Shown piece by piece: positions 60,031 through 64,000 of a DNA stretch of 64,000 nt. The position numbers and the translations under genes are program-made. Each line of letters starts with the position of its first letter. Position 1 is the first letter of the stretch. Location of the stretch: positions 1,984,001 through 2,048,000 of the forward strand of contig CM035361.1 of the NCBI GenBank assembly GCA_020137815.1, read 5' to 3'. The stretch is from Hormiphora californensis. Taxonomy: Eukaryota; Animalia; Ctenophora. A model generated the notes under the pieces. The model had not been told where the DNA came from. It saw only the letters and a program-made list of their open reading frames with translations, and searched no databases.

Positions 60031-63000
60031 TTAATTCGGGATCCCTGTTTCACTAACCACTCCTGGTGCCACCGTCATTGAATCAACCTGAGAGAAGTGT
60101 AGTTTTAGCAGGTGCACTGTGCAGACGCAGTGGGGATTTTTCTGGCAGTGGGGGTTTCCAGGCTGGTAGTTGTAACATACAAGGTGCCAATTATTGGTAA
60201 TACGTCCCAACCGTTGGCAGCCAACGGTTGGGACGTTGGTTTCTAATTTCGGGACTCGGGTGCCGGTGGGGAGACAAGCCCAATGAATAAGCTGAGTGTA
60301 AACACCAATAACCATGGTATACAGTATATTGTTTTGATTGTATAACTTACAAAGCTAGGCGGGACGGGGGTATGGTCGACACTGGTAGCTGGTTCAATCG
60401 TTCCACTTCTAGTAGCAATCTAAATGTAGAATAGAGATTTAGAGATATCATCTGATGTCCCCGTAAATATGGGATTAGGAAACTATTCAGTCAAGGCAGA
60501 AGGAGAAAACTAGAGAAAACTAGTGTACACAACAGGCCATCCCTTAGTGGGTCCACCTAATGAATTAAAAAAACAATACAATTATGAATTATCAGAGTCG
60601 TCAATCATTTTAAAAGAAAGAACTGAAAACAGTCGCTTACCGGTGGAATTGCCTTTAGAGGTTTCAACTTTCTGGATCTGAATGGTTGCTTAGCGACAAC
60701 TGGATCCATTATCTCAAACTTAGGGCTGACTCTGAAAACGAATCCTTATATCACATTGTACACACAAATATCACACGGGTACCAACACTAGGTTACTAGA
60801 CACAAACACTCATTTCTATGAGATGAGACTTCTGTATCCTCATTGTAACAACGGCGCCAGACCCCCCATTTGATTCCCAGACAGACGGTGCACTCAGATG
60901 GGGTCGGCGGCGCCAGACAGTGTTTTTATTACGTATACATTCTTGTTTTACCAGAAACGTATACAAATACTGCCCATTGCAGCCTAACAGCTGTGTGCTC
61001 CTAAGTTCCTACCCCCTCCCTATTCCTAACCTGTGTGAGGGTAGTTTGTTAATCTTCATGACTGAAACTACGTTCCCCCGTTCATCGTACTCAACTTCCT
61101 TTAGACCGGGTGGTCGACCGTGCTGTGCCTGAAATTAATGGGCATTTGTAATGATCATTCACCCAGAGGCCACCCATTTTGTTTGGGTCATGGCCAAGTT
61201 TAAGTTGGTGGGTTCAGGGTTTCTACACTCAATGAGAGTCAATAACAATACTCGTCCGAATGCAGAGTTTGTTTTCCCACGGTCTGTGTAACTGCGCGCA
61301 CTAACACTGCTGACAATATTACGCGCACAACTTTCACCAGGTTTCAGGCGCGCGTAACTATGGTAACACGAAGACCTTGTTGCTCAAAACAGGTACACAC
61401 ACAGCTTGCGTTTGGGCAGCAAATGAAGTATTTGGGCAGCAGCCAAGGAACTTACCTTGACCATAGCAGCAGATTGATGCGGCATCATGTTGTCTGGACT
61501 TGCTTCCGTTAGGGTAAAATCATGTTCTGGTATTATCTGTACCTGGGATGAGAAAGTGTGAATAATTTCAAATCGTTTTCCAAAATCTCACATCTAATAT
61601 TTATAAACTCACGACTTCAGGCTGTTGTATCTTTTTGACACGTTTCTTGGGCTTTGTAGGTCGTGCTGGAGAAGGTCGGGTAAATGTTGCACCTCCACCG
61701 TATATAACAGCCTCACACCACTGGTATAAAACTGATGCAGCCGCACTTTTAGATTCAACATCGTCACTTGTGTATCTGAAGAGAAATGATAAGTAATTAA
61801 CTGATAATTATAGAGAAAATAATTAATAATTAAATGATAATTAATTAACTAGTTATCTGTCACTGCTAAACAAATCGTTTCTGTGGTCTCCCTAAAACTT
61901 ACACCATATATTTCCGTTTCAGTTTTTTAACAAGGTTTTCAGGAACATCCTCCACCTTCAAACTCTCCATACGAGTCAAGAGGTCCCCGTTACCAAATAC
62001 CTTCTTAATTTGGCCATACTTAGTTCTGAAATGTTGATAAATTAATGATGAAATCTAGTGATAGATTAGTTTAACAATAATATTTGCACTAAGTATCCAA
62101 AAATTCAATAATTACTTCAATCAATATAAATTATGTTTTTCAGCAAACACACTTACAATAGTTCCCCCTTTATTAGTGAAGCCACCACTGTCATAACATC
62201 TTTAACACACTCGGGCGGGGCACTCAATGCTTTCATCTCTATCAGCACATACTTGATCATCTTGACATCAAACTCAGACTGATGGAAAGTAAGGGGTCAA
62301 AACTAAAAGTTCAACGCCGAAAAAGTTCCTAAAAAAGGTTACAAAGATACTCAAAGAGAGGAACTTATCCGTCTAGTAAACTGGGGGGTTCGACAGCTCT
62401 ACTACTTCACACACCTGTATCTCATCGCATGTAAGCTGGTAACAGTAAACCAGCTGGACCCACGTTGCCAATTTAGCAGCTGCTCCTCCCAATGTACCAC
62501 TAACATGGTCAGGATGCAGTTGGACATTATCAGCAAACCTGTACAGGGCGGGGTCAAAATAGTTGTACCATGTTGTGAAACTGTACAGGGCGGGGTCAAA
62601 ATAGTTGTACCATGTTGTAAAACTGTACAGGGTGGGGTCAGAATAGTTGCACCATGTTGTAAAACTGTACAGGGTGGGGTTAAAATAGTTGTACCAAGTT
62701 GTAAATCTGTACAGGCCACAGGGTAGGGTCAAAATATAGGTGTTGGGTTGGGGGCGGTACGTGGTCAGACATGGTTCATGAGACAAAGTACAAAGTAATT
62801 CAAGCACAAGGTTTTGTTTTGGGTCAAAGTAAAAGGTCTATCTCACATGAACTCACACTTAACACTTGTAAGCTACTGTATAGTAATATGAGCAGAGATA
62901 GAGGAGAAGTTTCAGTTGTTGAGGTCAGAACAGAACTCTAGAAGTCAGAAGAGAACTCTGCTATAGGGAGTTTTCACATCTCACTAACTAACGCGGTATA

Positions 63001-63239
63001 CTTATGTGACACGCTGCATCGCAGAGTGGCACAAAAATAGTTGTACCATGTTGTCGGCAGTAGCCAAGAACATAGAATTTGTGCGGTAAAATATTATTTG
63101 AATTCTAAAACGAAGGATTTCTTACGTTTTGAGACTCTCAGTACATGGTCTTGGTAGGATTTCAGCAGTTGAAGTATTGATCTGGTAGATAGTCTTTTCT
63201 AATTCCTCGAGAAACGTGTCATACCTATGTGGGTATAAA

Positions 63240-63318
<79 letters not shown>

Positions 63319-63342
63319 GAGAGAGAGATAGAGAGAGAGAAA

Positions 63343-63430
<88 letters not shown>

Positions 63431-64000
63431 AAGGGACTCACTTGTAGGTCTTATGATCCTGTTGCAGTGTCAACATGACCGCTTGGTAAAGGTAATTCTG
63501 CAGAGCTGGAGGTTCCTCGACACTCCGTAAACAGGCCACAACATCATTAGAAATACTGTACTGTTTGATACTGTCTCTTATCTGGTAAAGAGGGGATAGT
63601 TAGAAATACTGTAATGTTTGATACTGCCTGGTAAAGAGGGGGTAGTATTTACTCTTATACGAGGTACAATCAATAAAGTTGTCGGCAACTGATTTACTGC
63701 TAGAGGCAGAGGCCCAAAAATGGCTTTTCTACGGAATATTTAGTTACCTTATTTAGTTTGGTTATATTTGGTTTCTCAGTGAGAGGGTCAAAGATGGACA
63801 ATGCCTGATCTTCCTCCTGCTGCTGTTCAGTATTTTGGGTGTCATCCGGCCTAGGGAAACAAAATACAAATTAGTAATTAAGAAAATCAATCAATAATAT
63901 CAATTATTAAATCTATGTTTGTATTTCTCTCTCTCTCCAATCCAAAAACTTACAAATTCTCTTCATCCTCTTGAACCTCTCCCTCCTCCCTAATATCAAT
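60031..64000 (-). CDS. 5'-partial protein with two tandem dynein-MTBD-like domains and a C2orf81-like C-terminus
   Basis: 13 in-phase exons: >64000-63954, 63850-63748, 63581-63442, 63224-63126, 62538-62415, 62278-62157, 62025-61903, 61775-61613, 61542-61456, 61128-61031, 60731-60641, 60419-60351, 60087-60031. Exon structure is strong; domain calls are by eye. Confidence 0.8.
62539..62720. repeat. 42-bp tandem repeat, ~4.5 copies, each carrying a splice acceptor
   Basis: Minus-strand cctgtacag| at 62539, 62581, 62623, 62665, 62707. Confidence 0.92.
63245..63432. repeat. (AG)n microsatellite filling most of an intron
   Basis: AG run; as (CT)n on the coding strand it makes up most of intron 63225-63441. 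Confidence 0.95.

Follow-up and report, generated by a model that had tools for sequence, protein, structure and literature searches.

Candidate stalk-less modules resembling the dynein microtubule-binding domain in a C2orf81-family protein of the ctenophore Hormiphora californensis

Whether the microtubule-binding domain (MTBD) of the dynein heavy chain can be found in a protein that is not a motor is a question raised by a gene of the ctenophore Hormiphora californensis, located at one end of the stretch of DNA analysed here (the window, 64,000 nucleotides; positions 1,984,001-2,048,000 of contig C12, CM035361.1, in an assembly of 110.7 Mb and 45 contigs). This minus-strand gene has 17 exons (E1-E17) and 577 codons and extends beyond the window end. 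For the part that lies further on, coordinates are those of L003, a stretch that reaches 6 kb past the window end and in which the position equals the window position minus 60000; the joints observed in RNA are also given in this numbering. The original prediction described, at 61613-63581, a motor-less protein with two back-to-back dynein-type MTBDs joined to a C2orf81-like tail. All the peptide strings that it quoted are present on the minus strand, and its span runs exactly from the lower end of E12 to the upper end of E7. From the analysis presented here, it seems probable, although well short of certain, that the gene encodes a C2orf81-family protein with two tandem MTBD-like modules, the second of which would be a stalk-less MTBD homologue with a predicted ability to bind microtubules. 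The protein would comprise, in this order, the N-terminal helical region of the family, an acidic linker, two tandem three-exon modules (residues about 188-415, with repeat 1 at residues about 188-308), a basic Pro-rich linker and a Pro-rich tail.

The evidence that carries this reading comes from the second module, repeat 2, which is encoded by E10 (62157-62278), E11 (61903-62025) and E12 (61613-61775), all on the minus strand. E10 opens the repeat and resembles helices H1 and H2 of the dynein MTBD (IEMKALSAPPECVKDVMTVV), E11 forms its middle, resembles H3-H5 and has a net charge of +5, and E12 contributes an H6-like helix (SKSAAASVLYQWCEAV). The exons were compared one by one, using hhalign, with a profile (A1) for which the stalks of eight dynein heavy chains from this genome had been aligned, and E10, E11 and E12 fell in order on consecutive segments of the MTBD: E10 on columns 106-129 (H1/H2; score 25.2, P 5.5e-4), E11 on columns 144-176 (H3-H5; score 26.7, P 2.8e-4) and E12 on columns 184-206 (H6; score 19.6, P 0.012). 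With a wider MTBD-core profile (A7) that includes two stand-alone modules of this genome, the P values were 2.5e-5 for E10 (columns 20-46), 1.7e-5 for E11 (60-94) and 2.4e-5 for E12 (101-123). The scores were reached by none of 150 shuffled sequences for E10 and for E11 and by 2 of 150 for E12; likewise, among 134 natural fragments of 40 residues none reached the score of E10 or E11 and one reached that of E12, the fragment maximum being 20.7. A two-row profile of E10 and E7 gave 12 weak matches in the PDB, nine of which were dynein MTBDs aligned at H1, and the profile of E12 and E9 (A3) recovered no dynein there.

In repeat 2, H1 retains its PP-V motif, H3 its aromatic and basic start, H4/H5 their hydrophobic pattern and H6 the S-AA-L-W motif; the W, F and L residues found in H3/H4 of dynein are replaced by Y, L and M. 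Basic residues are kept at the H1, H3 and H6 positions, and the linker that follows has a net charge of about +7. Judged by these comparisons, repeat 2 is more like the dynein MTBD than chance would allow, and module 2 would be a stalk-less homologue of this six-helix domain.

Repeat 1 is encoded by E7 (63442-63581), which opens it with an H1-like helix (LRSVEEPP...) and whose acceptor joint 3581/3748 is present in RNA; by the divergent middle exon E8 (63126-63224), which is the best canonical GT..AG exon in the required phase; and by E9 (62415-62538), which closes it with an H6-like helix (GGAAAKLATWV) recognised by hhalign. These three exons are also on the minus strand. Against A1, E7 aligned to columns 106-131 (P 0.062, improving to 0.008 with A7) and E9 to columns 180-209 (P 0.028; 3 of 150 shuffles reached its score), that is, to the same dynein segments as E10 and E12, and in the 11 exons outside the repeats P was always > 0.15. 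When E7 was added to E10 the dynein score rose from 25.2 to 27.2, and adding E9 to E12 raised it from 19.6 to 26.6. The invariant P and V of dynein H1 are kept in both repeats, as is the S-AA-L-W motif of H6. Moreover, each repeat is a three-exon unit with phase-0 introns at its bounds and two internal introns, each of which leaves 2 nt of a split codon on the upstream exon; these split-codon introns occupy equivalent positions in both repeats (profile columns about 51-54 and about 95-101). This pattern is in keeping with an old tandem duplication and later decay in the middle of the first copy.

The two modules abut, with about 20 residues between H6 of the first repeat and H1 of the second. 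No coiled coil stands beside either repeat and no exon aligns to the coiled-coil columns of A1; H6 of repeat 2 runs instead into GGG and a Pro-rich basic stretch, also encoded by E12, where dynein would have the second coiled-coil strand (CC2). The absence of a coiled-coil stalk that had been predicted from the letters alone is in agreement with this result. Compared with the dynein MTBD (PF12777; PDB 3ERR, 6RZB and 6KIO), the likeness consists of the order and spacing of the H1-H6 motifs in repeat 2 and of H1 and H6 in repeat 1. The differences are that the C2orf81-like protein lacks the CC1/CC2 stalk and the AAA+ ring, that its modules lie side by side, that its first copy is acidic, and that the Pfam model of the dynein stalk (MT) stays below its threshold.

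The assignment to the C2orf81/DUF4639 family comes from the other end of the protein. The exons E1-E4 lie beyond the window (L003:5186-5077, 4930-4863, 4617-4538 and 4262-4187, minus strand; RNA joints 4928/5075, 4616/4862 and 4261/4537). E5 (63954-64077, of which 63954-64000 are in the window; minus strand, RNA joint 3849/3953) encodes the last part of the DUF4639 N-terminal region (DSWGRGSVP) and then the start of the acidic linker, which continues in E6 (63748-63850, minus strand; net charge -5, with both flanking joints in RNA contigs). A protein of Pleurobrachia bachei, P0004, aligns colinearly to E1-E7 with about 97% identity (96-100% over E1-E6), and its residues 7-168 match positions 9-174 of the 580 positions of the DUF4639 profile PF15479 with 100.2 bits (E 1.8e-28; the gathering score of the profile is 27 bits). 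A second P. bachei protein, P0001, also exceeds this score, with about 37 bits (37.4), and in the ESM Atlas the clusters nearest to P0004 are DUF4639. Judged by this profile, the gene is a ctenophore member of the C2orf81/DUF4639 family by virtue of its N-terminal exons, outside the window. The C2orf81-like tail of the original prediction therefore has to be divided: family membership stood, on the matches of PF15479 to P0004 and P0001, but the tail was not the right basis for it, since the tail exons, scanned one by one, match no profile. The N-terminal region of about 170 residues that fits the profile, the similar overall length and a plausible motile-cilia context are shared with the family; on the other hand, no MTBD-like modules have been described for it in open-access papers and preprints.

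The two P. bachei proteins (about 97% identity) were the only relatives of the gene found in databases. A phmmer search with E7 against 1.84 billion protein representatives returned the P0001 fragment and two junk repeat proteins only, and three homologue searches, whose length limits shut out full-length relatives, yielded at most the two Pleurobrachia fragments. Neither E12 nor P0004 had a match in metagenome scans, and the ESM Atlas gave no usable match to E10. The PF15479 profile did not match the locus when run against this genome, the PDB holds no chain of the C2orf81/DUF4639 family, and an AlphaFold model of P0004 alone was unusable (pLDDT 43). It was also observed that P0001 joins E2 straight to E5, skipping E3 and E4 (L003:4187-4617; 156 nt, in frame), which are contained in P0004, and so loses 52 residues of the DUF4639 core; P0001 also uses an internal GT in E7 (63478-63479; last exon base 63480). 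These differences may reflect alternative splicing or an assembly artefact.

Several groups of results weigh against a tandem pair of MTBD-like modules in this gene. The first is the silence of conventional searches. Pfam MT (PF12777; threshold 24 bits) matches no single exon, and among its 28 matches at E <= 10 in this genome the locus is absent; scanned as short single exons, E7-E17 match no Pfam model at E <= 10; and phmmer searches of the single exons E7, E10 and E11 found no dynein in the PDB. The check by HMMER against Pfam MT and DUF4639 that had been proposed for this protein was, at the exon level, negative. Searches of the same genome with E7, E10 and E11 returned the exons themselves and no dynein, so there is no retrocopy or paralogue. 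It could be argued from this silence, and from the shortness of the exon-level matches (23-33 columns, 21-38% identity), that short amphipathic helices have come to resemble the MTBD by chance or convergence, with no homology to dynein. We regard this as very improbable, because three consecutive exons lie on three consecutive MTBD segments in the right order, beyond all or nearly all controls, and because three quarters of the weak PDB matches (9/12) are dynein MTBDs. Another fold fared no better: an MA3 domain (PF02847), considered after a 12.8-bit phmmer match between E7 and PDCD4, was rejected, given that hhalign against three MA3 domains of this genome gave P >= 0.12 for every exon; the Pfam scan of single exons contained no MA3 match either.

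The second group concerns repeat 1. E8 has no relevant match to the MTBD (P 0.28 against A1) and, added to E11, lowers the dynein score; BLASTP detects no similarity between the exons of repeat 1 and those of repeat 2. From these results it could be proposed that there is a single MTBD-like module (E10-E12), that E7-E9 form an unrelated helical segment, and that the protein is monovalent, so that the expression "two back-to-back MTBDs" is overstated; the P of 0.06 obtained for E7, whose score was reached by 12 of 150 shuffles, and the net charge of -7 of repeat 1 agree with this proposal. Nevertheless, it appears rather unlikely to us, since E7 and E9 fall on exactly the segments of E10 and E12 and raise the scores of the combined profiles, intron phases and positions are identical in both units, and repeat 1 retains the invariant P and V of H1 and the AA-L-W motif of H6. 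What remains of the claim of two dynein-type MTBDs is a second repeat well supported by the colinear E10-E12 (P ~2e-5) and a first one recognised weakly, through E7 and E9, with nothing from E8.

The third group concerns the transcript. All introns of the chain E1-E17 are GT..AG with consistent phases, and the chain ends in a stop codon at 60031-60033. The RNA data, contigs from four oligo-dT seawater metatranscriptomes that are sparse everywhere at the locus, confirm 10 of the 16 introns in spliced form, and the E4/E5 junction is an eleventh supported intron by way of P0004, which supports the order E1-E2-E3-E4-E5-E6-E7. No RNA contig of the four sets supports the junctions E7/E8, E8/E9, E9/E10, E10/E11 or E11/E12, and E8, E9 and E10 lack any contig; among the repeat exons E8-E12 only the bodies of E11 (contig over L003 1903-2025) and E12 are covered, the latter also being joined to E13 (1540/1611). 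For E7-E12 the model consequently depends on the splice sites, on the phase and on the protein signal of the exons.

It was observed that the interval 62040-63440 has no contig in any of the four runs, though the flanking exons are covered, and that a direct join of E7 to E11 would be in frame and yield a single hybrid module. Together with the fact that both Pleurobrachia models stop inside E7, the uncovered interval could indicate that the middle of the gene model is wrong, either because E8-E10 are outside the main mRNA (for example, with E7 joined to E11) or because the N- and C-terminal parts belong to separate transcripts. This explanation is improbable in our opinion: with contigs so sparse throughout, a gap in coverage proves nothing; the specific MTBD signal in E9 and E10 argues that both are coding; the phases close only with E8-E10 or with the skipping of a whole unit; and no internal spliced-leader tail or poly(A) end was seen.

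A last point against the tandem pair is related to the family. Beyond Pleurobrachiidae the searches revealed no homologue of the middle region, and positions 175-580 of PF15479 have no match in the middle or tail exons when these are scanned singly, a silence that suggests that the modules may be missing in the vertebrate members.

The absence of a motor is directly supported by RNA. Contigs carry a spliced-leader tail at L003:5217, 31 nt upstream of the ATG (MSKGKGTRSS...), and these loose 5' tails (minus strand) are the 3' end of the published H. californensis spliced leader, ...CTACTTTAAACAAATTAATTTGAG (PMC8527503). Together with the Pleurobrachia relatives, this leader indicates a pleurobrachiid ctenophore and agrees with H. 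californensis. The C2orf81-like mRNA is trans-spliced and its product contains no motor: given that the spliced leader joins 31 nt before the ATG, there are no upstream exons that could encode AAA domains, an eventuality that the original prediction had left room for. Its description of the protein as motor-less holds in this respect, with an open reading frame of 577 codons and a small Dpy-30 protein as the product of the next upstream gene, to which the same leader tail is joined at L003:6035 on the same strand.

It is relevant to ask whether other proteins of this animal have such modules. A search of the genome with the MTBD-core profile revealed three non-dynein loci with an MTBD-like core. 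One is in contig C11 (5879430-5879747; L012:2890-3348, plus strand; E 1.1e-6), within the final exon of a gene that also encodes a hydrophobic stretch, possibly a membrane anchor; another, in contig C1 (6900335-6900646; L013:2791-3363, plus strand; E 1.9e-4), follows long E/K/R-rich coiled-coil exons; and the third, in contig C2 (275293-275424; L014:2992-3138, minus strand; E 0.07), has an incomplete core (H1-H3) and encodes a Pro-rich repeat protein. Pfam MT reaches the C11 and C1 loci below threshold, and against the PDB both modules match dynein MTBDs only. An AlphaFold model of the C11 module (pLDDT 84.7) had dynein MTBD and stalk structures as its best Foldseek matches (TMq 0.52-0.58), a result that is partly circular because the alignment used for the model included dyneins; the Foldseek matches also include a radial spoke 1 chain, 7jtk_C (TMq 0.53). 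Like the C2orf81-like protein, these stand-alone modules belong to non-motor genes, and E10 and E12 score as well or better against them than against dyneins; the H6 motif, for instance, is ASVLYKW in the C11 module and ASVLYQW in E12. They differ in that the core is in a single exon and in one copy, in contrast with the tandem three-exon pair of the C2orf81-like gene. Open-access papers and preprints contain no report of a non-motor dynein-type MTBD and no domain analysis of DUF4639; the statement that this architecture had no known description agrees with that literature, and the gene would represent a new architecture of a known domain.

How such a protein would work can be outlined from its parts. 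The two modules would derive from one duplication, with the first, acidic, keeping its H1-like and H6-like ends only. Dynein depends on helices H1, H3 and H6 to stay in its high-affinity, microtubule-bound state (PMC6629372), and module 2 together with the basic linker may bind the microtubule lattice as the dynein tip does. With no stalk, stalk registry cannot regulate this binding; it would be constitutive and static, because there is neither a CC1/CC2 registry switch nor an ATPase. Module 1 and the N-terminal region would serve to hold partners other than tubulin, and the bivalent binding that was originally envisaged is doubtful, because repeat 1 is weakly MTBD-like, half-decayed and acidic. 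An alternative is that the MTBD-like modules are real and yet do not bind microtubules, serving as bundles for protein-protein interaction, within the central apparatus or at another site. H1 lacks a stalk that would set it in its high-affinity position, repeat 1 is acidic and the N-terminal half has a net charge of about -27, all of which would suit this alternative. We consider it unlikely, in view of the basic H1, H3 and H6 residues kept in repeat 2, of the positive linker that follows it, and of the fact that a mammalian member of the family tracks central-pair microtubules.

The latter was reported for mouse ependymal cilia, where C2ORF81 fused to green fluorescent protein colocalises with HYDIN, resembles SPEF1 by stimulated emission depletion microscopy and was described as a 'typical CP-MT-associated protein' (CP-MT, central-pair microtubule; PMC12979858); in addition, staining for C2orf81 marks motile cilia in the human fallopian tube (bioRxiv 10.64898/2026.03.14.711768). 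By analogy with the mouse protein, the ctenophore protein, as a microtubule binder, could be anchored on the central-pair microtubules. A static central-pair binder is for this reason likelier than a cross-linker of the comb plates, a role suggested originally to which nothing in the analysis points.

Very little work has been devoted to C2orf81, a conserved protein of motile cilia, and the single 2025 paper that places it on central-pair microtubules (PMC12979858) does not say how it reaches them; a stalk-less, motor-less dynein-type head would give it a concrete and mutable binding element. It would also be a rare instance of an MTBD outside dynein heavy chains, and would bear on the origin of the dynein stalk tip and on the recognition of the tubulin lattice by static axonemal proteins. 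A broader proposal, which is tentative and at present doubtful, is that the microtubule-binding head is not exclusive to dynein, but may constitute a free-standing domain family of several non-motor proteins, represented in this ctenophore by at least four genes, and that in the C2orf81 family it may be the element that places the protein on central-pair microtubules. If this were true, the stalk-less relatives could show either that the dynein tip was a pre-existing microtubule binder inserted into a coiled coil, or that the tip was later copied out of dynein.

The rest of the gene encodes the tail, in five minus-strand exons. E13 (61456-61542) has RNA joints on both sides; E14 (61031-61128; QHGRPPGLKEVEYDERGNVVSVMK...), the basic and Pro-rich E15 (60641-60731) and E16 (60351-60419) are likewise supported by RNA joints; and E17 (60031-60087; RNA joint 85/349) carries the stop, its translation ending in ...VAPGVVSETGIPN*.

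The introns around repeat 1 have several peculiarities. The one before E9 contains a 42-bp tandem repeat (62535-62715; 4.3 copies, 92% identity), each unit of which ends in ...CTGTACAG, the acceptor sequence of E9, and if splicing used one of the upstream copies, at the acceptor 62580, this exon would gain 14 residues in frame. The E7-E8 intron holds a 190-bp (GA)n microsatellite (63241-63430), and similar GA/CT tracts are found in other introns of the locus (L003:4628-4790). In the intron before E7, the last ~45 nt (63585-63640) are nearly a duplicate of the first ~40 nt of E7 (63540-63581), and the C-terminus of P0004 (…SISNYPLPNTR) resembles the translation of this intronic copy.

The upstream neighbour is a minus-strand gene of three exons (L003:5390-6035, equivalent to 65390-66035 in window numbering) with a charged coiled coil and its own spliced leader; its first exon encodes a Dpy-30 motif (PF05186, E 6e-14) and its stop codon is at L003:5502-5500. 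The possibility that these exons form the N-terminus of the C2orf81-like protein was rejected, as the gene has its own leader and stop. At most 173 nt lie between the end of its RNA cover and the acceptor at which the spliced leader joins the C2orf81-like gene downstream, and the two genes, which share a strand, form an operon-like pair of likely ciliary members; as a candidate idea only, the amphipathic N-terminal helix of the C2orf81-like protein could be the docking site of a Dpy-30 dimer. Further upstream, a non-LTR (long terminal repeat) retrotransposon occupies L003:7184-10000 on the minus strand; its stop-free frame of at least 939 residues, which runs off the stretch examined, contains a reverse transcriptase (RVT_1, 96 bits) and an endonuclease/exonuclease/phosphatase domain.

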